Position numbers and translations under genes: made by a program. A stretch of 64,000 bases of DNA from Hyalangium minutum (GTDB taxonomy: Bacteria; Myxococcota; Myxococcia; Myxococcales; Myxococcaceae): contig NZ_JMCB01000002.1 of assembly GCF_000737315.1 (NCBI RefSeq), forward strand, positions 1 through 64,000, written 5' to 3'. The notes beneath the pieces were generated by a model. It was not told the DNA's origin. It was given only the letters and a program-made list of their open reading frames with translations, and searched no databases. Position 1 is the first letter of the stretch. The number at the start of each line of letters is the position of its first letter. Below are positions 697 to 55,823 of the stretch, in pieces.

Positions 697-820
697 TGCC
701 AACGGTCCCACGCCAGTGAAATCACACACAGTGGAAGCCAGCACCCAGCTGACCGCATCCTACTCCTCAGGTAAGATGCGGCAGTGGGAGGCCGTCGCCC
801 TCCACCTCCGCGAGGCGACC

Positions 821-7785: not shown

Positions 7786-7801
7786 TGTCCTATGTAGGAC
7801 A
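7786..7801. promoter_or_regulatory. 16-bp palindrome TGTCCTA-TG-TAGGACA upstream of pomY
   Basis: Perfect 7-bp arms, 48 bp before the pomY start; function inferred. Confidence 0.45.
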
Positions 7802-7848
7802 GCCCTCCCAGAGCACCCCAGCGCCTTGTGTGGAGGGCTCTTCAAGTC

Positions 7849-9654: not shown

Positions 9655-9690
9655 CGCCACGTCGCCCTGGGGTCGAACGAAGGGTTCTCG

Positions 9691-10647: not shown

Positions 10648-10685
10648 CCCTTTCCTTCTCTTCCTCCTCCGCCCACTGCTCGCCC

Positions 10686-13761: not shown

Positions 13762-13838
13762 GCGGAGGGGAGAACGGACTGGCGAGCGTCGGCTTGAAGT
13801 TCCGGGCATCGCCTCATAGCCTTCTTCCAGGCGCTCCC

Positions 13839-14066
13839 ATGGACTCGATGCTCACTGCAGAAGATCTCTGGCCTCTCGTGCAGAAGCTCTCCCACGACGA
13901 GCAGGTCCGTCTGGCGAAACTTGCGCTGAGCGCCGCTGCGAAGAGCGGCGGTTCGGATGCGGCGAGCTACCGAGCCAGTCCTCCGGGCCGGGAGGAGTTC
14001 TCTTCCGAGGAAGATCCCCTGGCGTGGGAAGCCGAGGGCTGGGACGAGTTCAATGCTCCGCGGTGA
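13839..14066 (+). CDS. Putative antitoxin (75 aa, acidic Trp-rich C-terminal tail)
   Basis: Directly upstream of the PemK/MazF gene and overlapping it by 14 bp; tail EEFSSEEDPLAWEAEGWDEF. Confidence 0.65.
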   Translation: MDSMLTAEDLWPLVQKLSHDEQVRLAKLALSAAAKSGGSDAASYRASPPGREEFSSEEDPLAWEAEGWDEFNAPR

Positions 14067-14385
14067 GCTCCGGTGGTACACGTTCGCCTCCCCGGACAAG
14101 CGGCGACCCGTTCTGCTTCTCACGCGCGACGAGGTCATTGACGCGCTCAACGAGATCATCGTCGTGCCTGCCACGCGGACCATTCGCGGGCTGGAGACAG
14201 AGGTGCTGCTGTCACCAGAGGACGGGATGCCGGCGGTGTGCTCCCTCAACTTCGATCATGTGAGCCTCGCTCACCGCTCACGGCTCGGGGCGCTCATCAC
14301 CCGCCTTCCGCCTGCGCGTTGGCCGGAGGTCGAGCGCGCGCTGCTCATCGCATGTGGGTTCTCTGACTCTGCAAGCGGGAGCTAA
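14053..14385 (+). CDS. mazF: PemK/MazF family endoribonuclease toxin
   Basis: RGELRWY...DKRRPVLLLT...IIVVPAT...CSLNFDHV pattern; 110 aa. Confidence 0.88.
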   Translation: MLRGELRWYTFASPDKRRPVLLLTRDEVIDALNEIIVVPATRTIRGLETEVLLSPEDGMPAVCSLNFDHVSLAHRSRLGALITRLPPARWPEVERALLIACGFSDSASGS

Positions 14386-14451
14386 GCCCCAACCCAGGAG
14401 GAACGCCCGGGGAGCGCGGCGCATGGGACGCGCCCCCCAGGCCAGGACGCA

Positions 14452-16575
14452 TCAGGCGTTCGTGATGGTGCCGTTCTGCACGCGCAGCGCGTGGGTGATG
14501 AACTGCCGCTGCAGCTCGTTCGGCGTCCGCTTCGTGTAGTCCTTGTGGACCTCGCTGCTGGGGAGCAGGTGGTAGGTGGCCAGCACCTCGCCGGGCTTGG
14601 CCTCCACCACGAGGAAGCCATGCCGATCCGCCTCGGAGAAGACCATGTTCGGGTTGGCCGCCCGTAGCGTCTGGTCCGTCTCCACGGCGATGTACCGGTA
14701 GATGGGGCTGCCTTGCGCGAAGCCCGCGCCCTGCACCGCCGTGCCCGCCTCCTCCTTGATGGAGCTGGAGGAGATGGACGGCGCCGTCAGCGTGGGCACG
14801 CCCTCCTCCACCGAGGCGAACGAGGCATGAATGTCCCCCGACAGGAAGACCGCGTTGCTCACGTTGTTCTTCACGTACGTGAGCAGCTCTTTCTTCTTCG
14901 TCGGGAACCCATCCCACTGGTCCGTCGTGAAGTAGAAGCGCTGCCGCAACGAGGCGTCCGGGATGTCCGTCTTCTGCCTCAGGTCCAGCATCAGCGCCGA
15001 CAGCGACACCGAGCTGACGATGAACTTCCACGTGTTCGCCGCCTGCAGCTTGCCCTTGAGCCACGTCTCCTGCTCGGTGCCCAGCGCGTTCTCGCTGGCC
15101 GTCTGCGTGGCCGCGTAACGGTAGGCCGCGTACAAGTCATACGTGTCCTTGATGACGATGTTGCGCGTGCCCCGGACGTCGAACGGGTTCAGCTTGCCCA
15201 TGTGCACGAAGGCCAGGCCCCGGGGCTTGCCCGCCGGAGGAATGGCCAGCGCACCCGCGCCCGCTGCCGCCAGCACCTGGTTCACGTAGGCCAGCGCCAG
15301 CTTGCCCTTCACCCACGTGGCCGCCTTCGCCGAGGCCTCCTGCTGCGTGAGCCCCGCCTGCTGCGACTGTGCCACGTATACCTGCCGCAGCGTGGCCCTG
15401 TGCTGCTCGTACTCCGTCGCGTCCAAGTCCACATATGCGAACAAGTCGTTCGCGAAGGCCGGCGTCGCGCCGAGCGCCGCCAGCACCGTCTCGTCCATCA
15501 CCACTGCGCCCGGGTAGCCGTCCTCGGGGATGAGGTGGTCCGGACGGTAGGTGCGGTAGTCGGTGACGATGAGCTTCACGTGCTTGCCGAACTCGAAGTC
15601 CCGGTAGATGCGCGTGTTGGGGTACTTCGGCTCGGCGTCCACGTCGATGGAGCCCTCGCCGGCGGTGCCCGCCGTGTCGATGGGCAGGAACTCGAAGAAC
15701 GCCTGCTCCGCGTTGCGCCGCCGGTCGTCCTGCTTCTCCGTCCGCCGCCCGTTCTCGTACGTCGCGTTCGAGCCCCAGCAGTCGTTGGAGAACTCGTGGT
15801 CGTCCCACATGTTGATGAACGGGTAGCGCTCGTGGACTTTCTGGATGACGGGATCCGAGCGCACCGTCTTGTACAGGTCGCGGTAGTTCGAGAGCGACTG
15901 CGCCGCGTAGTACTGGAAGAAGCCCGTCTTCTGGACCAGCGCCTCCTCCGGCTTCTGGAACTTCACCTCGCGCAGCGTGTTCGTGGACTGGAAGGCCGGG
16001 TCCCCCGTGGTCTCGTAGATGTAGTCGCCCAGGAAGACGATGGCGTCCGCGTCCAGGCCGAGCTGCGTCAGGCGTTGCCACGTGTTGTAGTAGCGCCCCA
16101 CGTAGTCCTGGCAGCTGGCGACCACGAGCTTCACCGCCACGTCCTCCCCCGGCGCCGGCGCCGTCTTGGTGCGGCCCACCGGAGAGACGAAGCGCTCGCC
16201 GTCGTGCTCGTAGACGAAGCGGTAGTAATAGGTGGTGCGCGGCGACAGGTTCGTCACCTTCACCTTGAGGGCGTTGTCGTGCGCAACCAGCGCCTGGAGG
16301 CCCTTGGGGTTGGCGATCAGCGTGCCGAAGCTCTCCTCGGTGGAGACCTCGAGCGACAGGGTGACGTCTCCGCCATGCTCCTCATCCACGGCGCGCGTCC
16401 ACAGCACCACGCTGTCGGGGCGTGGATCTCCCGAGGCCACGGACTGCGGGAAATAGGCGCGCGACTGCGCTGCCTGCTGCTCGGTCGTCTCTTCTTCGTT
16501 GCAGCCAAACGCAGTCGTCGCCGCGACCGCGACGATGGACTGCAAGAGGGTGCGGCGGTGCAGTTTCTGGGACAC
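14452..16575 (-). CDS. phoD: Alkaline phosphatase D family protein, Tat-exported lipoprotein
   Basis: RRTLL Tat motif and FGC lipobox; FPQSVASGDPRPDSVVLWTR, FLGDYIYE, WDDHEF, DQWDGF, LSGDIH. Confidence 0.93.
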   Translation of the reverse strand: MSQKLHRRTLLQSIVAVAATTAFGCNEEETTEQQAAQSRAYFPQSVASGDPRPDSVVLWTRAVDEEHGGDVTLSLEVSTEESFGTLIANPKGLQALVAHDNALKVKVTNLSPRTTYYYRFVYEHDGERFVSPVGRTKTAPAPGEDVAVKLVVASCQDYVGRYYNTWQRLTQLGLDADAIVFLGDYIYETTGDPAFQSTNTLREVKFQKPEEALVQKTGFFQYYAAQSLSNYRDLYKTVRSDPVIQKVHERYPFINMWDDHEFSNDCWGSNATYENGRRTEKQDDRRRNAEQAFFEFLPIDTAGTAGEGSIDVDAEPKYPNTRIYRDFEFGKHVKLIVTDYRTYRPDHLIPEDGYPGAVVMDETVLAALGATPAFANDLFAYVDLDATEYEQHRATLRQVYVAQSQQAGLTQQEASAKAATWVKGKLALAYVNQVLAAAGAGALAIPPAGKPRGLAFVHMGKLNPFDVRGTRNIVIKDTYDLYAAYRYAATQTASENALGTEQETWLKGKLQAANTWKFIVSSVSLSALMLDLRQKTDIPDASLRQRFYFTTDQWDGFPTKKKELLTYVKNNVSNAVFLSGDIHASFASVEEGVPTLTAPSISSSSIKEEAGTAVQGAGFAQGSPIYRYIAVETDQTLRAANPNMVFSEADRHGFLVVEAKPGEVLATYHLLPSSEVHKDYTKRTPNELQRQFITHALRVQNGTITNA

Positions 16576-16671
16576 GGTTCCCCCATTGAGTGAGCCGGGG
16601 CATGGGGCTCCCGGCGCGCGCAGCGTACTTCCCGGCCTGCACTGCGGGAAGAGAGGGGGAGGAGTCGAGCG

Positions 16672-17652
16672 CTACGGCTTGCCGCGGGAGGCCGAGCTCT
16701 TCACGGAGGCGGCGAACTCGGGAGGCAGCGGAGGCTGTACCAGCCCCTCGGTGCTGGCGAGCGGCTCGGGGAAGTCCGCGGTGGGCTGCTGGGGCCCTTC
16801 CAGCATCGCCACCAGCCGCTTCACGCGATCCACCTTCTTCGGGTGCTTGGCAAAGCTGTTCCGCCCGTCGGGGATCTTGGCGAGGAACTCCAGGTACTCC
16901 CGTGGGTCATACCCGGCGGAGACGAGCAGGCGGACCGCTTCCTCGTCCGCAGCGTACTCCTCGTTCTTGTCCAGGCCGTTCTCGGTCAGGTCCTTCACCG
17001 TACTGTCCGCGAAGTTCCCCAGCAACTCCAGGTGGTGGTCCAGGTCCAGCACACCGTTCCACTTGCCGAGGACTCCGTTCAGCTCATCCGAGAACCGGGG
17101 CGTGACATCGAGACCGAAGTGGCTCACCAGCTTGTTGTTCTCGCGGCTGTTCACCGCCCGCTCGCACTGCGACACCTTGAGCTTGCCGTAGCGCGTCAGG
17201 ACATGCTTGCCGGTGATGTGGGCAATCTCGTGCGCGAGCACTCCGGCGAGCTGCGCCTCGTTCTCCACGCCTTGGAGCAGCCCCCGCGTGACGAAGACGT
17301 AGCCTCCGGGGGCGGAGATCGCGTTGAAGGACTCCGGGGTCTTCAGCACGCCGAAGGTCCACCTCAGCGTGGGGCGCTGAGACTGCGCGCCCAGGTTCTT
17401 TCCCACGACGTTGACGTAGTGAACGAGCTTCTCGTCCGTCTCCAGCGGGAGCAGCCCGCCGCCCTGCTGAACCCAGTTGAGGGCCACGGCGCCGCCCAGC
17501 GCGTATTCCTCCTCCACCGAGGGAGGCTGCGCCAGCTTCTGGCACTCGGCGCGCTCTTGCTTCGCTTGCTTGGACGTCGCCGGGATCACCGAGCACGACA
17601 GCGTCAGGGCGCCCAGGCCCGCCACGAAGGGCTTCCAGGAACGGGCGCTCAC
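16672..17652 (-). CDS. M48 family zinc metalloprotease, probable lipoprotein
   Basis: NAISAPGGYVFVTRGLL, AHEIAH, EYAADEEA; GTG overlaps the upstream stop (GTGA). Confidence 0.9.
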   Translation of the reverse strand: MSARSWKPFVAGLGALTLSCSVIPATSKQAKQERAECQKLAQPPSVEEEYALGGAVALNWVQQGGGLLPLETDEKLVHYVNVVGKNLGAQSQRPTLRWTFGVLKTPESFNAISAPGGYVFVTRGLLQGVENEAQLAGVLAHEIAHITGKHVLTRYGKLKVSQCERAVNSRENNKLVSHFGLDVTPRFSDELNGVLGKWNGVLDLDHHLELLGNFADSTVKDLTENGLDKNEEYAADEEAVRLLVSAGYDPREYLEFLAKIPDGRNSFAKHPKKVDRVKRLVAMLEGPQQPTADFPEPLASTEGLVQPPLPPEFAASVKSSASRGKP

Positions 17653-31797: not shown

Positions 31798-31990
31798 GAG
31801 ATGACTTTACCCATGCCGCCCGCTCCGGCTACTCCGGGGCGTCTGGTCCCTTGCCTGCTTTGCGTTCTAGCTGATAGTGGACACTCCGCCCGGGTGCTTC
31901 CGCCCCGGTGAAAAAGTTCCCGCCCCCAGGGTCGGCTGTGCGCGGGGGGGCGCTGAATCGCCCCAGCTCTTCCATTTCAAGGAGTCTCAG

Positions 31991-32548
31991 ATGCGTTCGC
32001 TCAAGTGGGCAGTCGCCGTCGTGGCAGCAACCAGCTTCCTGGGTTGTGGTGGCAACCAGCCCTCCATCTACCGCGTGGCCGTGCAGCGGGTGACCGCGGA
32101 GAACACCCCTGCGGGCTGCTACGTCCCGGGTCAGGCGCCTACCACCATCAACGACAAGTCCACGAACCTCGTGGACCGGCAGCAGTGGGTTCTCTGGGAG
32201 GGTATCGAGGACGCCGTGTACCTGGAGCCCGGGAACATCAACTACAACATTGGCCAGGCCGAGAACGTCGCCATCAGCGCGGACACCATCCAGGGCACCA
32301 AGGCCGACGGCAAGCACACCTTCACCAGCGAGCGCACGCGGAGTGCCCCGAACGAGGTCTACACCACCTCGGCCACCTACACGATCGACAAGCTGGGGAG
32401 CACCATCGAGGGTGCGCTGCTGCTCCGCTCCGTGTGCACGGGAGCGAACTGCGATTTCACGACCGCTTGCGAGGTCACGCTGACCTACTCCGGCATCAAG
32501 ATCGACGCCGACCAGTTCAGCGTCTTCACCCCCAGCCCGGGGACCTGA
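31991..32548 (+). CDS. Hypothetical lipoprotein
   Basis: MRSLKWAVAVVAATSFLGC lipobox; GGAG RBS. Confidence 0.8.
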   Translation: MRSLKWAVAVVAATSFLGCGGNQPSIYRVAVQRVTAENTPAGCYVPGQAPTTINDKSTNLVDRQQWVLWEGIEDAVYLEPGNINYNIGQAENVAISADTIQGTKADGKHTFTSERTRSAPNEVYTTSATYTIDKLGSTIEGALLLRSVCTGANCDFTTACEVTLTYSGIKIDADQFSVFTPSPGT

Positions 32549-32562
32549 TCCCCTTTGGGCCG

Positions 32563-32591
32563 CCAGGCCTCTCCGGGCAGGGGAGGCCTGG
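32563..32591. terminator. GC-rich hairpin, possible terminator
   Basis: CCAGGCCTC/GAGGCCTGG stem just after the lipoprotein stop; no U-tract. Confidence 0.4.
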
Positions 32592-32662
32592 GCCTCAGGC
32601 AGGCGGAGCGCTCAGTCCAGGCGCGCGTCCGGGCCGAGGATGTTAAAGGTGGGGGTAACACC

Positions 32663-33505
32663 ATGACGCCCACCTCCTCCCGTTTCCGTGGCACCGAGAA
32701 GTACCTCTCCAGCGAGGGCCTCCAGGCCGCCGTCAACTGTGCGCTGACGCTCCAGCGTCCCCTGTTGGTGAAAGGCGAGCCCGGCACCGGAAAGACCCTC
32801 CTGGCCGAGGCCATCTCCGAGGCGCTCGGCATGCGCCTCATCCCCTGGCACGTGAAGAGCACCACCCGCGCCCAGGATGGCCTCTACGTCTACGACACCG
32901 TGCAGCGCCTGTATGACTCGCGCTTCGGCGACGGGGACGTGAAGGACATCCGCCGCTACATCCGCCTGGGGCCTCTGGGCGAGGCCTTCTCCGCGAAGGA
33001 GCGCGTGGTGCTGCTCATCGACGAGGTGGACAAGGCGGACCTCGAGTTCCCCAACGACTTGCTCCACGAGCTGGACCGGATGCGCTTCCGCATCGTGGAG
33101 ACGAACGAGGAGGTGGTGGCCGCGCACCGCCCCGTCGTCATCATCACCAGCAACAACGAGAAGGAGCTGCCGGACGCCTTCCTGCGCCGCTGCGTGTTCC
33201 ACTTCATCGACTTCCCGGACACGGACCTGATGCGCCGCATCGTCGGCGTGCACCACCCGGGGCTGGACGCGGAGCTGGCCGAGCAGGCCCTGAAGGTCTT
33301 CTACGAGCTGCGCGGCTTCTCGCGGCTGCGCAAGCGGCCCACCACCAGCGAGCTCATCGACTGGATCGCCGTGCTCAAGGCCAGCGGCGTGCAGAGCTTC
33401 AAGCTGGATGAGAACCTGCCCTTCCTCGGCGCGCTGCTGAAGAAGGAGCAGGACCTGATGGCGGTGGCCGAGGCGTTCGGCCGGGGCCGCCGGACGCGGG
33501 CCTAA
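32663..33505 (+). CDS. MoxR family AAA+ ATPase
   Basis: GEPGTGKT, LLIDEVDKAD, TSNNEKELPDAFLRRC. Confidence 0.93.
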   Translation: MTPTSSRFRGTEKYLSSEGLQAAVNCALTLQRPLLVKGEPGTGKTLLAEAISEALGMRLIPWHVKSTTRAQDGLYVYDTVQRLYDSRFGDGDVKDIRRYIRLGPLGEAFSAKERVVLLIDEVDKADLEFPNDLLHELDRMRFRIVETNEEVVAAHRPVVIITSNNEKELPDAFLRRCVFHFIDFPDTDLMRRIVGVHHPGLDAELAEQALKVFYELRGFSRLRKRPTTSELIDWIAVLKASGVQSFKLDENLPFLGALLKKEQDLMAVAEAFGRGRRTRA

Positions 33506-33523
33506 GTCCCGGGAGAGCGCGCC

Positions 33524-34729
33524 ATGTTCCTGCCCTTCCTCTACGAGCTGCGCAAGCGCAACATCCCCGTGGGCACCCAGGAGGCGCTGGCCCTCGCGGG
33601 CGCGTTGCGCGCGGGGCTTCATGACAGCAGCCTCGACGGCTTCTACCACGTGGCGCGCTCGCTGCTGGTGCACTCGGAGGCGCACCTGGACGCCTTTGAT
33701 CAGGCCTTCCTGGCGCACTTCAAGGGCGTGGAGTCCGCGGGCCTGCAGCTGACGCAGGAGCTGATGGACTGGCTTCGCGAGGCCAAGGAGCGGAGGGACC
33801 TCACCCCCGAGGAGCAGGAGCTGCTCAACTCGCTGGATGAGGAGGCCCTGCGGCAGCTCTTCGAGGAGCGGTTGCGCGAGCAGCGCGAGCGCCACGACGG
33901 CGGCAACCGGTGGATCGGCACGGGGGGCACATCGCCCTTCGGCAACGGGGGCCATGGGCAGCAGGGCATGCGCGTGGGCGGCACCGGCGGTCGGCAGGGC
34001 ACTGCTCTCTTCCAGGCCGGCGAGCGCAAGTACCAGGGCTACCGGGACGACGTGGTGCTGGACACCCGTCAGTTGGAGGTGGCGCTGCGCAAGCTGCGGG
34101 CCTTCGCGCGCGAGGGCGCTCCGGACGAGCTGGACGTGGACGAGACGATCAACGCCACGGCGAAGAACGCGGGCGAGCTGGAGGTGGTGACGCGGCCGCC
34201 GCGCCGGCCCAACACGCGCGTGGTGCTGCTGATGGACGTGGGCGGCTCGATGGATCCGTACGCAGCGCTGATGAGCCGGCTCTTCAGCGCGGCCAGCCGG
34301 GCCACGCACTTCAAGGAGCTGCGCACCTACTACTTCCACAACTGCGTCTACGGGAAGCTCTACGCCACCCCGCAGCTCACAGGCGGCACCACGGTGCCGG
34401 ACCTGATTGCGCAGGTGGGCAAGCACCACAAGCTCGTCATCGTGGGCGACGCGTACATGGCGCCTTACGAGCTGGGCATCCGCGCGGATGCCAACGGGCA
34501 CTACTCCCCGGACGGGCTGGAGGGGCTTGTCTGGATGATGCAGTTGGCGCAGCACTTCGAGCGCAGCGCGTGGCTCAACCCCGAGCCGCCTCGCATCTGG
34601 CCCAACAGCACCATCGCCACCATCGGCCGCGTCTTCAACATGTTCCCCCTCACCCTCGAGGGGCTGGGCGAGGCCGTGTCCCACCTCACCAAGGGCCGCA
34701 CCCCCAAGGGCCTCTCCGCCCGCCGCTGA
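33524..34729 (+). CDS. VWA domain protein (CoxE-like), MoxR partner
   Basis: DVGGSMD MIDAS motif, FHNCVY, IVGDAYMAPYEL. Confidence 0.9.
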   Translation: MFLPFLYELRKRNIPVGTQEALALAGALRAGLHDSSLDGFYHVARSLLVHSEAHLDAFDQAFLAHFKGVESAGLQLTQELMDWLREAKERRDLTPEEQELLNSLDEEALRQLFEERLREQRERHDGGNRWIGTGGTSPFGNGGHGQQGMRVGGTGGRQGTALFQAGERKYQGYRDDVVLDTRQLEVALRKLRAFAREGAPDELDVDETINATAKNAGELEVVTRPPRRPNTRVVLLMDVGGSMDPYAALMSRLFSAASRATHFKELRTYYFHNCVYGKLYATPQLTGGTTVPDLIAQVGKHHKLVIVGDAYMAPYELGIRADANGHYSPDGLEGLVWMMQLAQHFERSAWLNPEPPRIWPNSTIATIGRVFNMFPLTLEGLGEAVSHLTKGRTPKGLSARR

Positions 34730-34754: not shown

Positions 34755-36053
34755 ATGCTTGTCTTCATGCCCGTGGGTCTTCTGGCGCCGCAGAGTGATT
34801 CCTTTGCACTGCAGGCATTGGAGCGGCATCGCCGCAGGCGCGAAGAGCAAGGGATTCCCACGTTGACCGTGTTGGTGGGACCCCTGGGACGGTCCAAGGG
34901 CCTCTTTTCCCGCTGGCTCGCCTCGCGTCACCGGCCGCTCTGTACGGTTGTGTCCGCGACCCCAGCCGAAGCTGTTCGTGCTTGGACCGAGGCTCTCGCC
35001 AAGGCGCGGGACCTCCCGGCTGCGGCTGCGGATTTCCTCGGGAACGTGCTGGGCTTCGCCCCAGGGGCTCTGCGAGCCCGGTTGGAAGGCAAGACGGCCT
35101 ACGAGCGGGACGTGTTGCTTCAGGAGCTCCTGCCTGCGGCACCCGTGGGAGATTCCGGCCCCCTGTGCAGGCTGCTTTTGCTCTCTTCGGAGGTGCCAGC
35201 TCCTGGGGCTCTCTTCGAGCCGCTGCTCCGCGGTTATGGAGGGGACCCCGCTCGCACTTTCTCGGCGCTGCACGCCATCCTTCCCGCAGGGACGGCTCCG
35301 GCGCTCTTGCTGACGGGCTCCGGGGCAGAGGGGTGTGCGCGTGCTTCCAGAGCCGCAGCCAATCTCTGCGAGGCCGTGCCCGTGTTGCCCATCGCGCTCA
35401 GCGTGGAGCGGACCTGGGTCGACGCGTTCCTGGCAGGCCCTGAGAGTCGCTCACTCGCCATGGTCCGCGAGGGGCTCATCGAGGTGGCAGCGCCTTCACC
35501 TCAGGCTTTGCAGCGGAGGTTGGAGGAACTGGGCGTCCGCGACACCGAGCTTCTCGCTGCGCCCCTGGCCCAGCTTGCCGAGGATGGCGCCTCGGATGAG
35601 CTGGTGACCCGCTTTGGCCGGGCAGCGCTGGCTCGGGAAGCCGCTGCCCGCGAACCTTCCGGAGCCAGCCGCGCCCGGAGCGCCGAAGAGGAGTTCCTGC
35701 ACCTGCTCTTGGAAGAGATTCCAGAGACGCAAGGCCTCTTCGAGCTCAATCAGAGGGCAGGATTCCTCATCCAGGGCCGACCTGTCGAGGTGGATTTCCT
35801 GTCACTGACCTTGCGTGTGGCGATAGAGGTCGACGGTTACTATCACTTCCGGGACAAGGAAGCCTATCGGCGCGACCGCCGAAAGGATTTGGCGCTCCAG
35901 CGAGAAGGCTATCTGGTGCTCCGGTTCCTGGCGGACGATGTGGTGGAGCGGTTTCGCGAGATTCGCGATACACTCTTGGAGGTCGTGGCCCACAGGCGCG
36001 ACCCGTCAAGGCGGCAACCGCCGCTGGGGGAGGATGCAGATGGTGGGGAGTGA
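34755..36053 (+). CDS. Protein with a C-terminal DUF559/Vsr-like endonuclease domain and an uncharacterised N-terminal region
   Basis: RSAEEEFL...EVDFL...VAIEVDGYYH...DRRKDLALQREGYLVLRF. Confidence 0.85.
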   Translation: MLVFMPVGLLAPQSDSFALQALERHRRRREEQGIPTLTVLVGPLGRSKGLFSRWLASRHRPLCTVVSATPAEAVRAWTEALAKARDLPAAAADFLGNVLGFAPGALRARLEGKTAYERDVLLQELLPAAPVGDSGPLCRLLLLSSEVPAPGALFEPLLRGYGGDPARTFSALHAILPAGTAPALLLTGSGAEGCARASRAAANLCEAVPVLPIALSVERTWVDAFLAGPESRSLAMVREGLIEVAAPSPQALQRRLEELGVRDTELLAAPLAQLAEDGASDELVTRFGRAALAREAAAREPSGASRARSAEEEFLHLLLEEIPETQGLFELNQRAGFLIQGRPVEVDFLSLTLRVAIEVDGYYHFRDKEAYRRDRRKDLALQREGYLVLRFLADDVVERFREIRDTLLEVVAHRRDPSRRQPPLGEDADGGE

Positions 36054-37080
36054 AGTGTCTCATGTTGGAGATCTGGCACTCGCCTGGTTGCTGACACGCG
36101 CGGAGGGGAAGGGGGCTCGGAGTGACCTGGCCCGTGCGTTGAAGCCTCTCACGGACCACCGCTGGAGCAGTGGGGAGTGGAACACCCGGTTGGAGGGGCT
36201 GCTGGAGCAGCTCGTTCACGAGGGGCTCGTGCAGCAGAACGCTCGCAAGGGACTGACCCTCACCCCGCAGGGACGCACGCGGGCCCTGGCGGCCTTGCGC
36301 CTGGAGCGCCTGCCCAAGGGAACCACCTGGAAACAGCTCAAGCGGACTCACCTGGTGGCGCTGGCCTTGGGGCTGGCTCCTTCGCCGTCGACGCTGGCTC
36401 GGCTGGGCCGCGCGGATGGCATGCGCGCGGTGCTCGTGCAGAAGCAGCTCGGGCTCCCGGCTCCCGGCTCCCAAAGCCTCGCGCAGGTCCGGGATGCCTT
36501 GTGCTGGCGGCAGCTGGGCGTGGAGACGGACAAGCCTTTCACGCTGGCGGCCGTTCAGTCGGTGTTGCTCAGCCGGGCGCTGGAGGCCACGCGCGAGCTC
36601 GCTCCCTCGCAGGCGCTGCACCAGCTCGCCGCCAGGAGCGTGGGCGCGCGGCGGACGGACCCGGAGAGTCTCCGGCTGGCCACGCTGCGGGCCTGGGCAC
36701 TGCCTTTCGGGGAGCCCGCTCCGGCTCAGCCCCGTGCTCCAGACAGCGCCTCCGCCCCTCCGAGCGCCGCCGCCACGGGAGCGGAAGCCACTCGCCAGGA
36801 CGAGGGCCTGCACCACTTCGCGGAGCGCGTCTTGCAGGTAGCCCGTGGCGCGACAGAAGGACGTTTTGGAGATGACCGGGTCTTCATCTCTCACGTCTGG
36901 CGGGCCATGCAGGCGCCCGGCCTGGACGAGCAGTCCTTCAAGCGCCGCCTCATCGAAGCCAACCAGAAGCGGCTCCTGTCCCTGAGCCGCGCCGACATGG
37001 TGGAGCTGATGGACCCCACGGAGCTCTCCGCTTCGGAGACCCGGCACCTGGGCGCCACCTTCCACTTCATTGCGTTGTAG
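36034..37080 (+). CDS. Hypothetical protein with an N-terminal winged-helix-like region and a distinct C-terminal domain
   Basis: GGAGG RBS and ATG 36034 overlapping the upstream stop; LLEQLVHEGLVQQNARKGLTLTPQGR resembles a wHTH wing. Confidence 0.75.
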   Translation: MQMVGSEVSHVGDLALAWLLTRAEGKGARSDLARALKPLTDHRWSSGEWNTRLEGLLEQLVHEGLVQQNARKGLTLTPQGRTRALAALRLERLPKGTTWKQLKRTHLVALALGLAPSPSTLARLGRADGMRAVLVQKQLGLPAPGSQSLAQVRDALCWRQLGVETDKPFTLAAVQSVLLSRALEATRELAPSQALHQLAARSVGARRTDPESLRLATLRAWALPFGEPAPAQPRAPDSASAPPSAAATGAEATRQDEGLHHFAERVLQVARGATEGRFGDDRVFISHVWRAMQAPGLDEQSFKRRLIEANQKRLLSLSRADMVELMDPTELSASETRHLGATFHFIAL

Positions 37081-37121
37081 CCGCAGCTCACCCCGCCGTA
37101 CGGGCTTGAGAACCGCCGCTC

Positions 37122-40100
37122 ATGAGCCACCAGAACGATCTCCGCCTCTCCGCCTTCTTCTCGGACACCGAGGTCTTCCACCCCATCCAGCACCGCCACG
37201 ACATGTGGCGGCAGGATCCGTTCGATGTCGAGACGATCCACAAGGAGGCACGCTCCGCCTTCGAGCGCCTGCTGCTGCGCGCGACGACGCCCCCGCGCCC
37301 GGAGTCCGGCCGCATCCTGCTGCTGCTGGGGGACTCGGGCTGCGGGAAGACCCATCTGATGCGGGCCTTCCGCTCCAGGGCCCACGAGCGCTCGCTGGGC
37401 TTCGTCGGCTACATGCAGATGACGACGGCCCAGTCCAGCTATGGGCGCTACATGCTCAACAACCTGGTGGACTCGCTGGACCAGCCCTATCTGGCGCCCT
37501 CGGAGCCTCGTTCGGGCCTGGAGCGGCTCTCCGGAATGCTGCTGGAGCGGTGCAGCAAGGTCGCCGCCCTCCTCGCGGACTCCGAGCAGGATGCCGATGA
37601 GGTGCCCGCGCTGGTGGACATTGCCGCGGATGAACTCAAGGGGCAGCCCCTCTTCGAGCGGTGCGACCTGGACCTGATGCGGGCGCTCTTGTTCCTGCAG
37701 CGCAATGACACGCGCATCAAGAGCCGGGTGCTCAAGTACCTGCGCTGCGAGGATTTGTCCGAGGGCGATCGAAAGGTGCTCGGAGGTCTGGTGCCTCGCA
37801 TCCACGACCATCACCCTCTGGAGACCGTGGAGCACCTGGGGCGGCTCGTGGCGGCGCTGGACCACTCGCTGGTGTTGTGTGTGGACCAGCTCGAGGGGTT
37901 CAACGACTTCGAGTCCCAGCAGGTGCCGCACTTCCGCCGGGCCATGACCGCGCTGTGTGACTTGGCCGATCGCGTGCCCTCGTCGATCATCGTCATCAGC
38001 TGCTTGCACAACTTCTGGCAGGGGTTGAGCAACCAGCTCACGCAGTCGCTGCGGGACCGCATCGAGAATGCGCCGCCCTTCATCAAGCTGGAGGCCCAGC
38101 GCACGGCCGATGAGGCCCGGCTCATCACCGAGCGCAGGCTGGAGCACCTCTACGCGCTGAAGGATGCACCCTTTGATTACGCGGAGCCCACCTACCCCTT
38201 CCCGCATGAGGGCTTCGAGGCGCTGTCGGGCCATCGCGCACGGGAGGTTCTCGATACGTGCCGGCGCTGGCGCGAGCACGCCATCTCCACGGGAGTGCTT
38301 CCCCATCAGTTCCCCTTGAGCAGCGAGAAGGCAGAGCCGCTGCCCGAGGTTCCCCCGCAGGAGACCCTGGCGCTGGATCAGGAGTGGAACGATTTCCGCA
38401 CCGGGCACTCCACGCCGCCTCCGGAGGAGGACTCGGAGCTGTCCTCGCTGCTGGCGTGGGCGCTGCAAGCTTCCATGGACGAGTTGGAGACAGGACACCG
38501 CGTCCAGGCCCGGTCCGAGGGTGAGGCCCTCTTCGTGGAGCTCACGCCCGGAGATCAGCGGCTGCGCCTGGCCTTCTGCAACAAGGGGGCTCAGCGGGGA
38601 GCCCTCGCGAGGCAGATCGAACAGGTGCGCAAGGACGCCAAGGGGCGCATCCCCGTCGCCGTTCGTTCCAGCTCCTTTCCCAACAGCCCCAAGTCCGAGG
38701 CAGCCCTGGAGCTGGGCAAGCTCCTCAGCAAGGGCGGGCGCAACGCCGTGCTCGAGGACAGCGATTGCCGCCTCATCCTGGCGCTGAAGGCTTTCCGGCA
38801 GCAGCACGAGTCCTACCCGGGCTTTGCCGCGTGGCTCCGCTCGACCCAGCCCCTGAGCCAGCTCAAGCCCTTGCGGGACATTCTGGATCTCGACCACCTG
38901 AGCCGCCCGGCGGCCGTGCCCGGTGCAGCGCCCGCGCCCGCGGTGGCGCCGCAGACCGAGTCTTCAGCGCCTGCTCCCGTGACCGCTCCACCCGTGGCAG
39001 CTGCTCCTCCCCGGGCGGCGCCGGAGCGCCAAGGGACCGAGCAACCCCCCCCGCAGCGTCAGCCTTCTGCTCCCTCACGTGCGCGTGGGCCGGTGCCTCT
39101 CCGGTTGGGCGCCGAGGAGAGTCTGCTCAAGGAAGAGATCTCCCTGCTCCCGGATGAGCTGACCAAGCATGCGGCCTTCCTGGGCGGCTCCGGGAGCGGC
39201 AAGACGACACTGGCGCTGAACGTCATCGAGCAGCTCTTGCTGCAGGGCATTCCGGCCATCCTCGTGGATCGCAAGGGAGACCTGGCGGGCTATGCGACCG
39301 AGGAGTTCTGGACGCGCAGTGCCAGCAGCCCCGAGCGCGCCGAGCGCCAGGCCCGGCTCCGCGAGTGCCTGGATGTGGCGCTCTTCACTCCGGGGCATCC
39401 ACAAGGGCGTCCGCTGTCCATCGCCATCGTTCCGGAGGGGCTCGCTCAGCTGCCAGAGTTCGATCGGCAGTTGGCCACCCGCCATGCCGCGGATGCGCTG
39501 GCGGGCATGCTGGACTACCGGCAGAGCCCTCGCGACAAGTCCTGCCGGACCTTGCTCAGTCAGGCCATTGATCAATACGTCCAGCTCTCGCAGCAGACCG
39601 TCGCCCTGGAGCCGCTCATCCAGTTCATCGGGGACAAGGATCCTCGGCTGGTCAGCGCCGCGGGCCGGCTGGACACCAAGTTGTTCGACAAGCTGGCGGA
39701 TGACCTGGACCGGCTGCGCATCGACACGGAGAAGACCCAGCTGCTGGGGGGCAGCGGGGCAGACAAGCTCGACATGGACCTGCTGCTCGGACGAGGCGCC
39801 CATGCGCGGCCCGGAAAGACGCGCTTGAGCGTTCTCAGCACCCGGTTCCTGGGAGACACGCACAGCGTCCTCTTCTGGATCTCCCAGTTCCTCATTGAGG
39901 TGACGCGGTGGCTCAACCGCAGCCCCTCCAGCTCACTGCAGGCCGTCATCCTCTTTGACGAGGCGGACATGTACCTGCCTGCCACGCGTCAGCCCGCCAC
40001 CAAGCAGCCCATGGAGAACCTGCTGAAGCGGGCTCGCTCGGGAGGGCTGGGCTTGATGCTGGCGACCCAGAGCCCGGGCGACTTCGACTACAAGTGCCGC

Positions 40101-40349
40101 GACACCATCCGCTCCTGGTTCGTGGGCCGCGTCAAAGAGAAGAACTCCTTGGACAAGATGCGGCCCATGCTCAGCGAGGCCCGGGTGGACTTCACGGCGA
40201 AGATCCCCCAGCAGACCACGGGCGAGTTCCACCTCATCCGTGAGGGCAAGGTGAACCGCTTCCGGGCGGACCCGTCCGCCCTGTCCACCGAGCAGCTCGC
40301 GGAGGAGGAGCTGCTGCGGCTGGCCGCCCGCACTCAGTCGCGCCCCTGA
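37122..40349 (+). CDS. 1075-aa dual P-loop NTPase: N-terminal AAA-like domain plus C-terminal HerA/FtsK-like domain
   Basis: Walker A GDSGCGKT (37329-37352) with LCVDQLE; second Walker A GGSGSGKT (39183-39206), ILVDRKGD, ILFDEAD, RARSGGLGLMLATQSP. Confidence 0.9.
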   Translation: MSHQNDLRLSAFFSDTEVFHPIQHRHDMWRQDPFDVETIHKEARSAFERLLLRATTPPRPESGRILLLLGDSGCGKTHLMRAFRSRAHERSLGFVGYMQMTTAQSSYGRYMLNNLVDSLDQPYLAPSEPRSGLERLSGMLLERCSKVAALLADSEQDADEVPALVDIAADELKGQPLFERCDLDLMRALLFLQRNDTRIKSRVLKYLRCEDLSEGDRKVLGGLVPRIHDHHPLETVEHLGRLVAALDHSLVLCVDQLEGFNDFESQQVPHFRRAMTALCDLADRVPSSIIVISCLHNFWQGLSNQLTQSLRDRIENAPPFIKLEAQRTADEARLITERRLEHLYALKDAPFDYAEPTYPFPHEGFEALSGHRAREVLDTCRRWREHAISTGVLPHQFPLSSEKAEPLPEVPPQETLALDQEWNDFRTGHSTPPPEEDSELSSLLAWALQASMDELETGHRVQARSEGEALFVELTPGDQRLRLAFCNKGAQRGALARQIEQVRKDAKGRIPVAVRSSSFPNSPKSEAALELGKLLSKGGRNAVLEDSDCRLILALKAFRQQHESYPGFAAWLRSTQPLSQLKPLRDILDLDHLSRPAAVPGAAPAPAVAPQTESSAPAPVTAPPVAAAPPRAAPERQGTEQPPPQRQPSAPSRARGPVPLRLGAEESLLKEEISLLPDELTKHAAFLGGSGSGKTTLALNVIEQLLLQGIPAILVDRKGDLAGYATEEFWTRSASSPERAERQARLRECLDVALFTPGHPQGRPLSIAIVPEGLAQLPEFDRQLATRHAADALAGMLDYRQSPRDKSCRTLLSQAIDQYVQLSQQTVALEPLIQFIGDKDPRLVSAAGRLDTKLFDKLADDLDRLRIDTEKTQLLGGSGADKLDMDLLLGRGAHARPGKTRLSVLSTRFLGDTHSVLFWISQFLIEVTRWLNRSPSSSLQAVILFDEADMYLPATRQPATKQPMENLLKRARSGGLGLMLATQSPGDFDYKCRDTIRSWFVGRVKEKNSLDKMRPMLSEARVDFTAKIPQQTTGEFHLIREGKVNRFRADPSALSTEQLAEEELLRLAARTQSRP

Positions 40350-40366
40350 GCGTGGACCCCCGCGCT

Positions 40367-40430
40367 CCCGCATATAATGATGCGGGGCCTCAAAACGGGG
40401 TTGGGTAGGATGTTTGCCTACCTGAGTTTT
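40367..40430 (+). terminator. Two hairpins after the ATPase gene, likely a terminator
   Basis: CCCGCAT/ATGCGGG (40367-40386) and GGTAGG/CCTACC followed by TGAGTTTT (40404-40430). Confidence 0.5.
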
Positions 40431-40532: not shown

Positions 40533-42131
40533 ATGGCTACCATCTCCAAGCTCCCTTCTCCTTCGCTTCCGACTTCGACCCCCCGCACCGAGACGGCGCA
40601 GCCTAAGGCCCCGGCCCCGGCTCCTCGCTCGGAGGCCCGCGCGAGCCGCGCGGCGGATGGCTTCGACTCCGCACCCGCGCGCTCGAACTTCGTGGATCGC
40701 CCGGGCAACACCTTCGTGGCGCGCCCCACCGGCCTGCGTCCGGGCTCGCCGCAGCTGAACCCGACGGAGGCCCCCGCGCCCCGCCCGACGCTCTCGCGCC
40801 AGCCGCTGGCCCGCGAGGCGACAGCGCAGACGCTCAAGGCCGAGGCCACGCCGAACCTGGAGGTGAAGGACCTCTCCAAGGTCACCTCCACAGTGAGCTT
40901 CGACAAGGACGTGAGCATCGACTCGCTGAAGCTGTCGATGGACCTGGCGCACACCTACCGGGGCGACCTGAAGGTGACGCTGACGAGCCCCTCGGGGAAG
41001 ACGGCCACCATCAGCGACAAGCAGGGCGGCAGCGCGGACGACCTGAAGGGCACCTTTGACCTGAGCGCCTTCAAGGGTGAGAAGACGAAGGGCACCTGGA
41101 CGCTGACGGTGGAGGACACGGCGCGTTCCGACACGGGCACGCTGAAGAACTGGAGCCTCGAGGCCACGGGCAAGGCCGAGGGCCCGGTGGATCCGAAGCC
41201 GACCCCCAAGGGCCCGCCTGTCGTCGCCATCTTCGACGGCGGCGTGGACTACAAGCACTCGGACTTGGACGGGGCCATGTGGACCAACCCGAACGAAGTC
41301 GAGGGTGACGGCATCGACAACGACGGCAACGGCGTGGCGGACGACATGCACGGCTTCAACGTGGGCTTCAACTCGGGCGACCCGATGAAGGGCGAGGGCA
41401 CGGACCACGGCACGCACGTGGCGGGCATCATCGCCGCCGAGGACAACGGCCAGGGCAACACTGGCGTGGCGGCGGGCAAGGCGCAGGTGCTCTCGGTGGG
41501 CGGCCTCTACGACGGCAATGACTTGCTGACGAACTTCGAGCGCTCGGTGGACTACGTGGTGGGCCTGAAGGACAAGGGCGCCAACATCCGCGCGGTGAAC
41601 GCGAGCTTCGGGGACGAGTACAAGGACGCGGCCTCGCAGGCGCGCTGGAAGGCGGCCATCCAGAAGCTGGCGGACGCTGACATCCTCCTGGTGGCGGCCA
41701 CGGCGAACGGCAACGGCAGCAACATGAACAACGTGCAGGACTTCCCGGCCAACGTGGATCTGCCCAACGTCATCACCGTGGCGTCCATGGACAAGAACAA
41801 CGACAAGCTGGCGCGCTTCTCCTCGCACGGCGACAAGGTGGTGGAGCTGGCCGCAGTGGGCGAGGACGTGCTGAGCACGGTGCCGGGCGGCCGCTGGGAG
41901 AAGATGAGCGGCACCTCCATGGCCACCCCGCGCGTGGCGGCCACCGCGGCGCTCATGTTCGCGGAGAACCCCAACCTCACGGCGGCGCAGGTGCGCGACA
42001 TGCTGGTGAAGACGGTGGAGGTGGATCCGGACCTGAAGGGCAAGGTGAGCACGGGCGGCAAGCTGGACATCGCCGCCGCCGTGGCCGCCGCCCGCGCCGC
42101 CGCGGCCACCTCCTTCGCCGCGCGCCCGTAG
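40533..42131 (+). CDS. S8 subtilisin-like protease with an N-terminal P-domain and no classical signal peptide
   Basis: Catalytic D (FDGGVD), H (DHGTHVAG), S (SGTSMATP); P-domain HTYRGDLKVTLTSPSG...GTWTLTVED. Confidence 0.92.
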   Translation: MATISKLPSPSLPTSTPRTETAQPKAPAPAPRSEARASRAADGFDSAPARSNFVDRPGNTFVARPTGLRPGSPQLNPTEAPAPRPTLSRQPLAREATAQTLKAEATPNLEVKDLSKVTSTVSFDKDVSIDSLKLSMDLAHTYRGDLKVTLTSPSGKTATISDKQGGSADDLKGTFDLSAFKGEKTKGTWTLTVEDTARSDTGTLKNWSLEATGKAEGPVDPKPTPKGPPVVAIFDGGVDYKHSDLDGAMWTNPNEVEGDGIDNDGNGVADDMHGFNVGFNSGDPMKGEGTDHGTHVAGIIAAEDNGQGNTGVAAGKAQVLSVGGLYDGNDLLTNFERSVDYVVGLKDKGANIRAVNASFGDEYKDAASQARWKAAIQKLADADILLVAATANGNGSNMNNVQDFPANVDLPNVITVASMDKNNDKLARFSSHGDKVVELAAVGEDVLSTVPGGRWEKMSGTSMATPRVAATAALMFAENPNLTAAQVRDMLVKTVEVDPDLKGKVSTGGKLDIAAAVAAARAAAATSFAARP

Positions 42132-54140: not shown

Positions 54141-54833
54141 CTAACAATTGCTCGTGGGGGGTACCGGCTGAGGATAGAGGAGCTGCATCGGATCCCAGAC
54201 GTATTTGTCGATGGGGATCCAGGTGAAGTGGCTGAGGGCGTGCTTCTCAGTGAAGCGCATGAAGCGCTCGGAGACCATGAGAACTCCCCACATGCCTCGG
54301 GGACGGAACACGTCCTCCCCGTTCCAGGTTCCTGGCTCCAAGGCGAGTCCGTCGATGGCCCCAGGACCGATGGCGCGGCACCAGGTGCACCGCATGGGCT
54401 TGTGGATCAGGATGTGGCTACGGCTCATGTCCAGCGCGGGCTGGCCGTAGGTGGGCAGCACATAGAGATACCGAGGCGGTGGTCCGGGCTTGGGGCCACG
54501 GCGTTTCCGGCGGACCCGCAGAATCTCCACCGGCTGGAAGCCACTGAGCCCCGTCAGGCCCTCGGCCTTGAAGTCTTCAGCAAAGCGCTCGGTTACCAGC
54601 AGTCCACCGCTGGGCTCCTGCATGAGGTCTCCGAAGTCCTTGCCGTAGAGCTCCAACTCACCTTGGAACGGAGGCTCCCAAGTCAGCATCCCCACGGTCT
54701 CTCCGCATTGAGGACAGCGCAGCGCAGGGCCGACATTCGCCTTGCTCGGGCTGAACTCCGTGTCGTGCTGGCCCTCAGTGAGCTTCTTCATGACGAAGAA
54801 GCGCGGTGGGGTTGAAGAAAAGTTAGCAGCCAT
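54141..54833 (-). CDS. Putative immunity protein with two CxxC motifs (resembles the myxobacterial double-CXXCG/Imm families)
   Basis: PRFFV, RCPQCG, RCTWCR, WNGEDVF...VSERF; family resemblance from recall. Confidence 0.65.
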   Translation of the reverse strand: MAANFSSTPPRFFVMKKLTEGQHDTEFSPSKANVGPALRCPQCGETVGMLTWEPPFQGELELYGKDFGDLMQEPSGGLLVTERFAEDFKAEGLTGLSGFQPVEILRVRRKRRGPKPGPPPRYLYVLPTYGQPALDMSRSHILIHKPMRCTWCRAIGPGAIDGLALEPGTWNGEDVFRPRGMWGVLMVSERFMRFTEKHALSHFTWIPIDKYVWDPMQLLYPQPVPPTSNC

Positions 54834-54921
54834 CAGTGAAGATCGTGCGCATCTCTGGCCGACTACAGAATTACTGCAAGAAGATTTCGAACTCCGCAGG
54901 AGTCACTGTCTTGTGGAATCC
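54823..54921 (-). pseudogene. Probable 3' remnant of a polymorphic toxin gene with an internal stop
   Basis: Reads GFHKTVTPAEFEIFLQ*FCSRPEMRTIFTDGC*; the final TAA overlaps the start of the immunity-like gene. Confidence 0.45.
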
Positions 54922-55823
54922 AACAAACTATATGGGCGTGTTTGGTGGATTATTTAGTTCCGCTAGTCTGGATGTTTTGCGAATGCGCTCTGCTTCTTCG
55001 AAATACTTGCTGAGTTGCGTGACCTCGTCTGGGCCGAACGCCTCAGGACGGTCCATTATCCTCCGTCGAAGATCAAAGAACTCGGATTCGGCTGTTCGGT
55101 ATGCTCTGTAATTTTCTTCGGCCCGGAAAGCTTTGCTGATTCCGAGTAAGAGTCCGCTGGTTAAAGTTAAGATTGTCATGAATGCTTTCGCCCAAAGATT
55201 TGCTGGATCGTATTCTTGTACCAAGGCTGCAACTAGGATCGAGGCGCTCACGCTCCAGGTGACCGAATAAACATGAAGTCTCTCGAACAAAGCCGCTTTG
55301 CTTTTCCAAAACACTAGAGTGCCCATGAACCGATCGTAGTGCTGCTGAAGGCGCTCTCGGGAAGGCTCTTTGAAATGAACTGCTTTCTCGAAGCCGGAAC
55401 CACCGGGATGCAATTGTACGCGGCGAAAGAGGCTAATGAAGAGGTGAAGAAATGTACCAGCGGCGCATGCTGCCAGGACAGTCGTTGCGATTTGCCAGAG
55501 GTCCACCAACATTCAACAGCCTCTCCGAAGAAGTATTGTTAGAGAGTGTATCGAAACTGAGGATTCGAAGGGCAAGTCCACTAGGTGCGTGTCGGAGTAC
55601 CGCCAAAATTCGGCTCCTACATACGATCTGTAGCGGTGCGTGTAGATCGCACCACTCATGATGTAGTGGGTCGTCGAGGTTCTCCGACAGGCTCCTAGCG
55701 GGTCTTGTTGCATAGAAAATCACTTTGGGCTTCGTTGCGCTCAAACTTGAGGGTTCCTAATTCGTGCAAGTTGGGTGTGGATTCCATCCTGCGAATGATG
55801 GGACTACTTGCAAGTAGAGCCAC
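54835..55823. mobile_element. Low-GC horizontally acquired segment; no mobility gene seen
   Basis: Hand counts of four 60-bp lines in 55021-55260 give 42-57% GC against roughly 70% in the flanks. Confidence 0.7.
54928..55512 (-). CDS. SLATT/DUF4231-like two-TM effector with an extra N-terminal TM; low GC
   Basis: Two adjacent TM helices (YSVTWSVSASILVAAL; FMTILTLTSGLLLGI) followed by ENYRAYRTAESEF. Confidence 0.65.
   Translation of the reverse strand: MLVDLWQIATTVLAACAAGTFLHLFISLFRRVQLHPGGSGFEKAVHFKEPSRERLQQHYDRFMGTLVFWKSKAALFERLHVYSVTWSVSASILVAALVQEYDPANLWAKAFMTILTLTSGLLLGISKAFRAEENYRAYRTAESEFFDLRRRIMDRPEAFGPDEVTQLSKYFEEAERIRKTSRLAELNNPPNTPI

Follow-up and report, generated by a model that had tools for sequence, protein, structure and literature searches.

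Three adjacent plus-strand genes, here called g1, g2 and g3, lie within a 64,000-nt stretch of the Hyalangium minutum genome (contig NZ_JMCB01000002.1, positions 1 to 64,000; hereafter the window), and their make-up raises the question of whether they act on invading DNA or serve the chromosome of their host. The original prediction had presented them as a candidate undescribed defence or DNA-processing system. We found that they belong to a cassette recurring in at least five bacterial phyla, in which g2 and g3 form the core and g1, which carries the nuclease, is optional. Among the explanations considered, the best was a chromosomal DNA capture system directed against invaders (phages or plasmids) with a g2–g3 core and g1 as a detachable nuclease effector, to which we assigned a probability of about 0.5. 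The points counted in its favor were the domain content, the linkage of the genes, the effector-like loss of g1, the apoptosis-type neighbors at some loci, the patchy spread, the uneven rates of evolution, the base composition of g1 and an independent computational prediction for the same set of domains. Several corrections to the original prediction, including an absent enrichment in defence islands, mean that the defence function is therefore something we infer and not a finding.

The largest protein, g3, contains two complete nucleoside triphosphatase (NTPase) modules, exactly as had been claimed. It matched the Pfam families AAA_22 (E = 1.6e-10), AAA_16 (2.3e-8), HerA_C (1.9e-6) and DUF87 (1.3e-5), and TrwB as well; the AAA_22 and AAA_16 matches fell in residues 50–315, where NACHT, nSTAND, TniB, Hda and IstB also matched weakly. 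The best PDB matches by sequence were YjgR and HerA, and PADLOC assigned residues 681–1042 to mad8 (E = 1.7e-22). Both Walker A/B sets (G70–T77 with D255/E258, and G688–T696 with D946/E947) were invariant in 30 homologues, and so were the arginines of the HerA module. The conserved middle domain of about 280 residues is possibly an inactive restriction endonuclease (REase) fold, and inspection by eye revealed a conserved strand, 'VALCN[KR]', at the expected REase (D/E)xK site; hhalign detected no similarity between this domain and g1.

The description of g1 as a nuclease proved right for its C-terminus but not for the protein as a whole. Residues 346–410 matched DUF559 (E = 4.3e-9), the catalytic core (E345, D347, E358, D360, G361, H364 and Y371–D378) was invariant in 40 homologues, and Foldseek matched the C-terminus to I-Bth0305I (3r3p). 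The first ~335 residues, in contrast, adopted an AAA+ fold with a lid in an AlphaFold2 (AF2) model (predicted local distance difference test score, pLDDT, 92; predicted template modeling score, pTM, 0.88), and its best Foldseek matches were ORC1 (2v1u), Cdc6/Orc1 (2qby), MuB (8xvc), HslU and TnsC. Throughout the 40 homologues the Walker A motif was degenerate (GPxGxxxxxW, with no conserved lysine) and the Walker B motif lacked acidic residues. Judged by these motifs, g1 combines a catalytically inactive AAA+ domain with an intact DUF559/Vsr-type endonuclease, and the dead AAA+ subunit would represent a new tethering mode for a Vsr-type nuclease. The idea that this scaffold is a paralogue of the g3 AAA+ module was rejected (hhalign probability <1%).

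The proposal that g2 is a DNA-binding protein was borne out by a confident AF2 model (pLDDT 88) with two winged-helix-like domains, and we regard g2 as a putative DNA-binding or adaptor protein on the strength of that model. No family in Pfam, NCBIfam or PADLOC and no PDB sequence matched it. It thus represents a new winged-helix family without a Pfam model, comprising 2810 clusters at 50% identity with E ≤ 1e-3 and 819 with E ≤ 1e-30. Its Foldseek matches were weak and scattered over PadR, DtxR, MarR, MukEF and JetABC, with DtxR also found by profile (E = 0.006). A kleisin/KITE identity, suggested by the MukE/F and JetABC matches, was discarded as too weak (TM-scores ~0.2, E 0.02–0.2).

Scanning a single genome for each GTDB species provided 21 loci and a metagenome scan with the g2 profile 52 more, and domain-by-domain profile hidden Markov models (HMMs) were run across all loci. 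In 78 related loci, wherever the contig reached, full-length g2 was immediately followed by g3. The nuclease gene g1 lay directly upstream of g2 in ~30 loci (about two thirds), in Myxococcia, Chondromyces, Planctomycetota, Bryobacterales and many soil contigs, and was coupled to g2 by a conserved overlap of 4–20 nt. It was missing from ~15 loci with enough upstream sequence, where the upstream gene was often on the opposite strand, and it had decayed elsewhere: L009 has it broken across four frames, and L039 retains only a DUF559 remnant. The gene order is beyond chance, dozens of independent loci in several phyla having it in common. Since g2 and g3 are strictly linked and g1 is dispensable, the core unit is g2–g3; the earlier view of the trio as a conserved unit therefore survives in part, with g1 reduced to an accessory.

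Homologues came from Myxococcota, chiefly from Archangiaceae-type genera. The trio as such was present in Myxococcota, Planctomycetota and Acidobacteriota, and distant trios of the same order were present in Actinomycetota and Alphaproteobacteria (Tsukamurella, Nonomuraea and a Methylobacterium megaplasmid). These distant trios consist of an X-DUF559 protein, a protein of 223–260 aa and an AAA+...HerA protein of ~1090 aa; the HMM of the g3 N-terminal part aligned over nearly all its 600 positions, and the HerA relative from Tsukamurella again matched mad8 in PADLOC (E = 1.1e-21). The clades were star-like, with 45–50% identity between families and phyla alike, which we counted for the defence reading, and Hyalangium versicolor clustered with the Myxococcaceae clade and not with other Archangiaceae. 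Among 16 complete trios, mean pairwise identity was 0.54 for DUF559, 0.56 for the g2 C-terminal domain, 0.55 for HerA and 0.47 for AAA+, while the g1 scaffold (0.30), the N-terminal half of g2 (0.35) and the g3 middle domain (0.37) evolved faster, as expected of recognition or interface modules.

The statement that the trio matches no named system was correct in that PADLOC (whose models cover candidate systems up to 2023) and NCBIfam name none, recognizing only a mad8/HerA-like module, but the combination of domains had been predicted in 2024. While dissecting DndH, Rakesh, Aravind and Krishnan (NAR 2024, PMC10853773) computationally defined HerA/FtsK capture systems, predicted to act against invaders, and one class of these combines a HerA/FtsK ATPase, an Orc/CDC6 AAA+ domain, an inactive REase after the AAA+ core, an active REase and winged helix-turn-helix (wHTH) domains, on one or several polypeptides and, in a subset, with a separate fast-evolving multi-wHTH protein. 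In the logic put forward there, the AAA+ and wHTH parts localize the system, the HerA motor takes hold of invader DNA and passes it on, and restriction falls to the nuclease (PMC10853773), a theme restated by the same group in 2026 (PMC12839542).

Compared with that description, g3 supplies the HerA/FtsK ATPase (HerA_C, DUF87, TrwB, mad8 and YjgR/HerA matches, with invariant Walker motifs), the DUF559/Vsr domain of g1 supplies the active REase-fold nuclease (absent from about one third of the related loci), and g2 supplies the wHTH protein, its N-terminal half being less conserved (identity 0.35) than the engines (0.47–0.56). The AAA+ module of g3, which by its AAA_22, AAA_16 and weaker matches may be of either the Orc/Cdc6 or the STAND type, is a candidate for the Orc/CDC6 component, and the g3 middle domain, for which no Pfam, PDB-profile or hhalign match was obtained, is by its position a candidate for the inactive REase. 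A mobile or defence neighborhood was not found for the trio, apart from a Tsukamurella island and the Polyangia loci described below. The trio differs in that its nuclease is of the DUF559/Vsr type on a dead AAA+ scaffold and in that AAA+ and HerA are fused through a Pro/Ala linker in one 1075-aa protein. From these sequence features, it appears best filed with the Orc/Cdc6 + HerA/FtsK capture systems, and relative to the description in PMC10853773 the dead-AAA+/Vsr effector, the AAA+–linker–HerA fusion, the g2 family and the g2–g3 core with a dispensable g1 look new. The trio is not described in the work of Kaur et al. 2020 and 2021 on MoxR–vWA, EAD and bDLD systems (text on HerA, DUF559 and Vsr) or in the 2026 STAND survey. 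If it is an immune system, it would to our knowledge be the first concrete testable example of a class that so far rests on computational prediction, and one that is widespread (~2800 g2 clusters at 50% identity, at least five phyla) yet missed by current defence-finding tools.

Under the capture model, g3 subunits would assemble by way of their HerA/FtsK modules into a ring acting as a pump for double-stranded DNA, and its Orc/Cdc6-like AAA+ and middle domains would provide ATP-dependent loading or holding on DNA. In g2, target recognition would fall to the fast-evolving N-terminal winged helix and helical domain, and docking on g3 to the conserved C-terminal winged helix. Recruitment of g1 would depend on its dead AAA+ domain, which probably serves as an inactive subunit beside the g3 AAA+, or on the translationally coupled g2, and the Vsr-type endonuclease of g1 would then nick or cut the DNA fed by the motor. 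Complex formation, DNA translocation, the targeting of DNA and the role in defence are all steps that we infer.

Table 1. Positions of the genes, domains and neighboring features (L-numbers denote loci of our survey; other nucleotide positions refer to the window)
Feature	Position	Strand	Remark	Basis
g1	34755..36053	+	432 aa	ORF call
g1 AAA+ domain and helical lid	residues ~15-335		inactive; Orc/Cdc6-, MuB- and TnsC-like	AF2, Foldseek
g1 endonuclease	residues ~336-415		DUF559/Vsr-type	Pfam, alignment
g2	36034..37080	+	348 aa	ORF call
g2 N-terminal winged helix	residues 1-87			AF2
g2 helical domain	residues 99-222			AF2
g2 disordered linker	residues 230-255			AF2
g2 C-terminal winged-helix-like domain	residues 259-348		conserved	AF2
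g3	37122..40349	+	1075 aa	ORF call
g3 Orc/Cdc6/STAND-like AAA+	residues ~40-320			Pfam, motifs
g3 middle domain	residues ~320-600		conserved; possibly inactive REase	
g3 Pro/Ala-rich linker	residues ~600-660			
g3 HerA/FtsK-type ATPase	residues ~660-1045			Pfam, PADLOC, PDB
Run of four hairpins	40348..40424	+	abuts g3 stop codon	sequence, RNA fold
Unknown 223-aa protein, MoxR-like AAA_5 ATPase, CoxE-type vWA protein	31877-34729	+	directly upstream of g1	
Subtilase S8 gene	40533-42131	+	3' of the trio	
Low-GC islet	54141-55512	-	two ORFs	
L023 apoptosis-like conflict genes	7657-8679 and 13351-17100			
L005 WD40-type gene	13237-16914		~1230 aa	
L019 nuclease-HerA fusion	9269-11509		746 aa	

Other HerA-containing systems resembled the trio less closely. 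In SIR2–HerA and DUF4297–HerA, assembly with HerA activates the effector, which in the case of DUF4297 is a nuclease. These systems (PDB 8wiv, 8xau, 8j4u, 9c1m) likewise join a HerA-family hexameric ATPase to a toxic effector, and the C-terminal module of g3 matches them weakly, but the resemblance covers only sub-regions (E 1e-10 to 1e-3), neither SIR2 nor DUF4297 is recognized by PADLOC in g1 and g2, g3 contains in addition an Orc/Cdc6-like ATPase and a middle domain, and the trio needs a dedicated wHTH protein. The best PADLOC match of the g3 HerA module pointed to MADS (methylation-associated defence system), which Maestri and co-workers reportedly described in 2024 and which comprises eight genes, a methyltransferase and a kinase gene among them. 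No other mad genes accompany the trio, however, a mad3 match being confined to the P-loop (E = 1.4e-3), and no methyltransferase was detected among the ten neighboring window proteins scanned. DndH matched g3 weakly (E ~1e-3, residues 938–1009), whereas DndF, DndG, an SWI2/SNF2-like module and a link to phosphorothioate genes are all lacking in the trio. Menshen (NsnABC) is ParB-DUF262-based and no PADLOC match to it was returned for the trio, and CoCoNuT/McrBC with a Vsr effector has a different architecture; both were rejected.

Loci without g1 showed which other genes can stand beside the g2–g3 core. In the g1-less Sorangium locus L023, a gene encoding an effector-associated domain and a protease (EAD1-trypsin) lies just upstream of g2 and a giant WD40 gene lies downstream. 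WD40 proteins of ~1230 aa were seen beside the pair at Polyangia-type loci lacking g1. In L013 (13212–19398), also without g1, a caspase-bDLD3 gene directly follows g3, and the next gene encodes a 1271-aa protein with RNA polymerase alpha C-terminal domain and sigma-70 region 4 modules; L012 (10777–16981) has ORFs of the same size and position, which on these grounds probably form the same caspase-bDLD3-type pair. If the cassette is an immune system, these loci link DNA-pumping ATPases to apoptosis-like effectors in Polyangia. In Verrucomicrobia bacterium LW23 (L019), a PDDEXK_1 nuclease is fused to a HerA module that matched that of g3 with an HMM E-value of 1e-155; the protein lacks the Orc/Cdc6-like half and g2 is absent, giving a minimal nuclease–motor variant. 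Variable effectors at g1-less loci and the loss of g1 are typical of conflict systems.

The g2 C-terminal domain (~255–348; motif RFGxDKVFISHVW...LSRADLV...FHF) was also encountered on its own in predicted viral contigs from IMG/VR (L082–L091, among which L083 is the same as L075 and L088 the same as L077). It made up a 118-aa protein, formed the C-terminus of proteins of ~360–380 aa, one of them beside a tail-tube gene, and was embedded in proteins of 1400–2000 aa, of which one begins with a portal-like region (PDB 8rka, E = 2e-4). In one receiver-domain protein of a predicted viral contig it occurs twice. This distribution suggests that the domain is a DNA-binding or interaction module common to the cassette and phages, and the viral proteins possibly have a counter-defence aspect. 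Since the domain is also found in phage proteins of virion-associated or polyvalent kinds, a portal fusion among them, it could be the contact point that phages have copied as a decoy or inhibitor; if so, the two sides would make a directly testable defence/counter-defence pair. A wider proposal, that g2–g3 is the universal sensor–motor core of a large unrecognized immune family, found in complex bacteria with large genomes, with swappable effectors and with phage decoys resembling the g2 C-terminal domain, is in our estimate unlikely. We are equally doubtful that the effectors of such a family would comprise the Vsr nuclease on its dead AAA+ adaptor, the caspase-death-domain protein, the EAD-trypsin and the fused PD-(D/E)xK nuclease.

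Several results weighed against the capture model. The original prediction had named enrichment in defence islands as a check, and a flank census gave a negative answer: among 109 ORFs flanking 26 loci, only two matched PADLOC, both as generic Ser/Thr kinases, and apart from one Cas1 the rest were metabolic, transport or regulatory genes. LuxR/GerE regulators recurred upstream of the trio (4/109). In Myxococcaceae the trio occupies a stable syntenic site, acyltransferase-epimerase ... pseudouridine synthase-ThrE. No g3 relatives were found in INPHARED or IMG/VR, and PLSDB returned only three distant ones through their HerA regions, namely the same-order trios described above, two of them on chromosomal-looking records. 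The proteins themselves added to this side of the balance. Pfam searches with five homologues returned nothing for the g3 middle domain even with E values as high as 10, no PDB profile matched it, and hhalign revealed no similarity or interface between g1 and g3. Many lineages have g2–g3 in an operon that contains neither a nuclease nor another effector, and a mechanism based on a nuclease therefore cannot be universal. In Polyangia, the adjacency of genes for caspase and trypsin effectors could be a coincidence in genomes rich in them. We know of no experimental test of the capture systems or of any homologue of the trio.

Much of this context would also be seen if the cassette were a housekeeping machine that processes DNA in bacteria with large genomes, such as one for repair or resection like archaeal HerA–NurA, and this is the main rival, which we consider a serious if rather less probable explanation. 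Here the Vsr-type enzyme would nick damaged or mismatched DNA, the HerA motor would process it, and g2 would target chromosomal sites. Vsr and HerA–NurA are bona fide repair enzymes, the trio too places a HerA-type motor and a nuclease on DNA, and the catalytic core of g1 is Vsr-like. The stable site shared by Myxococcaceae and the close relatives of the window, the good representation of named Archangiaceae and Myxococcaceae genera among the homologues, the non-defence flanks without island enrichment, and the absence of the trio from phages, with only distant relatives in the plasmid collection, all agree with such a role. However, g1 is absent or pseudogenized in many lineages in which g2–g3 persist, and identities of 45–50% between families of one order are as deep as those between phyla, with one within-genus discordance. 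The trio also has a lower GC content at third codon positions (GC3) than its neighbors, its recognition-type modules evolve fast, and in Tsukamurella it sits with a toxin–antitoxin pair in an insertion inside a ribosomal-protein cluster. The specific parallels are loose as well: NurA is lacking, and the phyletic pattern and the dispensable g1 misfit a universal repair role. Vsr is a stand-alone enzyme of ~150 aa that works with Dcm, whereas DUF559 is the C-terminal fifth of the 432-aa g1, and no cytosine (dcm-type) methylase was seen among the neighbors scanned in the window and the flank census. If the housekeeping explanation is nevertheless the right one, the cassette would define a new pathway in which Myxococcota and Planctomycetota process DNA with a HerA motor.

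The Tsukamurella insertion bears on a further explanation, in which the cassette comes from a mobile element (a domesticated transposon or a transfer module), either as a remnant or still in working order, and may now persist selfishly or as an addiction module. In T. tyrosinosolvens (NZ_LR134464, L079), ~9 kb inserted between rplN and rpsQ contain VapBC, the DUF559/223-aa/DUF87 trio, a gene with a transcriptional-activator domain and a DEAD/DEAH helicase gene; the record is labeled 'plasmid 22' and is probably a chromosome fragment, not a plasmid. An AAA+ protein like MuB or TnsC, an REase-fold nuclease (as in the nuclease/ATPase pair of Tn7) and an FtsK-like pump would once have served transposition or actinomycete-type transfer. 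The island-like insertion and the cross-phylum spread are in line with this, and MuB and TnsC were among the best structural matches of the g1 scaffold. Like effectors of the Orc/Cdc6-NTPase + REase kind, which are related to Mu/Tn7 (MuB/TnsC) and to eukaryotic CR effectors, g1 places a P-loop domain of the Orc/Cdc6 clade before an REase-fold nuclease, and these effectors are thought to derive from Mu/Tn7-like transposons (PMC10853773, section 26). The same study describes some HerA/FtsK capture neighborhoods as domesticated transposons (PMC10853773). The g1 NTPase, though, has neither the Walker A lysine nor the Walker B acidic residues, and because its ATPase is dead g1 cannot act like MuB or TnsC. 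Moreover, no transposase, integrase or relaxase was present in the cassette, the window neighborhood or the flank census (terminal repeats were not searched for), the sole trace being a Phage_integrase fragment 4 kb downstream in Sorangium, and the position is syntenic in several families. We regard a mobile-element identity as very unlikely.

The capture model as set out above takes the trio as the functional unit, and the genes directly upstream of g1 gave reason to consider a larger one. A 223-aa protein, a MoxR-like ATPase and a von Willebrand factor A (vWA) protein precede g1 in the same orientation, the successive gaps up to g1 being 6, 18 and 25 nt, and the arrangement is the same in L001 and L002. 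MoxR–vWA pairs gate effectors in described ternary conflict systems (Kaur et al. 2020, PMC7159879), and in a six-gene operon of this type the chaperone pair would threshold the activation of the trio, an arrangement that could hold alongside the capture model. The pair is linked to the trio only in the window, L001 and L002, and is absent upstream of it in L007, whose g3 is 75% identical, and in all other lineages. The vWA protein belongs to the CoxE type and carries no effector or EAD fusion, and GC3 is 0.94–0.95 for MoxR and vWA and 0.87 for the 223-aa ORF versus 0.73 for g1. Co-transcription with the trio is possible in this genome; because the linkage is confined to the two closest relatives, the two genes are probably a separate chaperone pair, and a chaperone-gated six-gene system seems very unlikely.

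The locus layout agreed exactly with the arrangement described at the outset of the work, three co-oriented genes with a 20-bp overlap between g1 and g2 (36053 − 36034 + 1) and a 41-bp gap between g2 and g3 (37122 − 37080 − 1). Homologues of g1 mostly begin at its second methionine, so the real start of g1 may be the ATG at 34767, 12 nt downstream, and a longer alternative ORF for g2 from 35938 has no homologue support. The GC content of the window is ~68%. GC3 was 0.73 for g1, 0.84 for g2 and 0.87 for g3, by which all three are coding; neighboring genes have 0.9–0.95, and the clearly less host-like value of g1 was counted for the defence reading. Four hairpins in a row are formed by the 96 nt past the g3 stop (ΔG −39 kcal/mol, z −2.78, equaled by 2 of 200 shuffles). 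The terminator-like hairpins that had been reported are thus present, but only the last one (GGGUAGG...CCUACCU, then GAGUUUU with a short U run) resembles a terminator, and the transcription unit probably ends there. A consensus promoter/terminator scan of 31.5–41 kb flagged no terminator on the plus strand and is uninformative at 68% GC; Rfam and tRNA scans of the window were empty.

Two other features of the window were noted. A subtilase S8 gene whose product has a proprotein-convertase P-domain lies 3' of the trio and is kept in L001 and L007 only. Farther downstream, where no Rfam or tRNA feature was found nearby, an islet with a GC content of 0.54–0.60 against 0.68 overall contains two ORFs, one encoding a 230-aa protein with paired CxxC motifs and the other a 194-aa protein with N-terminal hydrophobic helices, and it looks like a horizontally acquired two-gene cassette.

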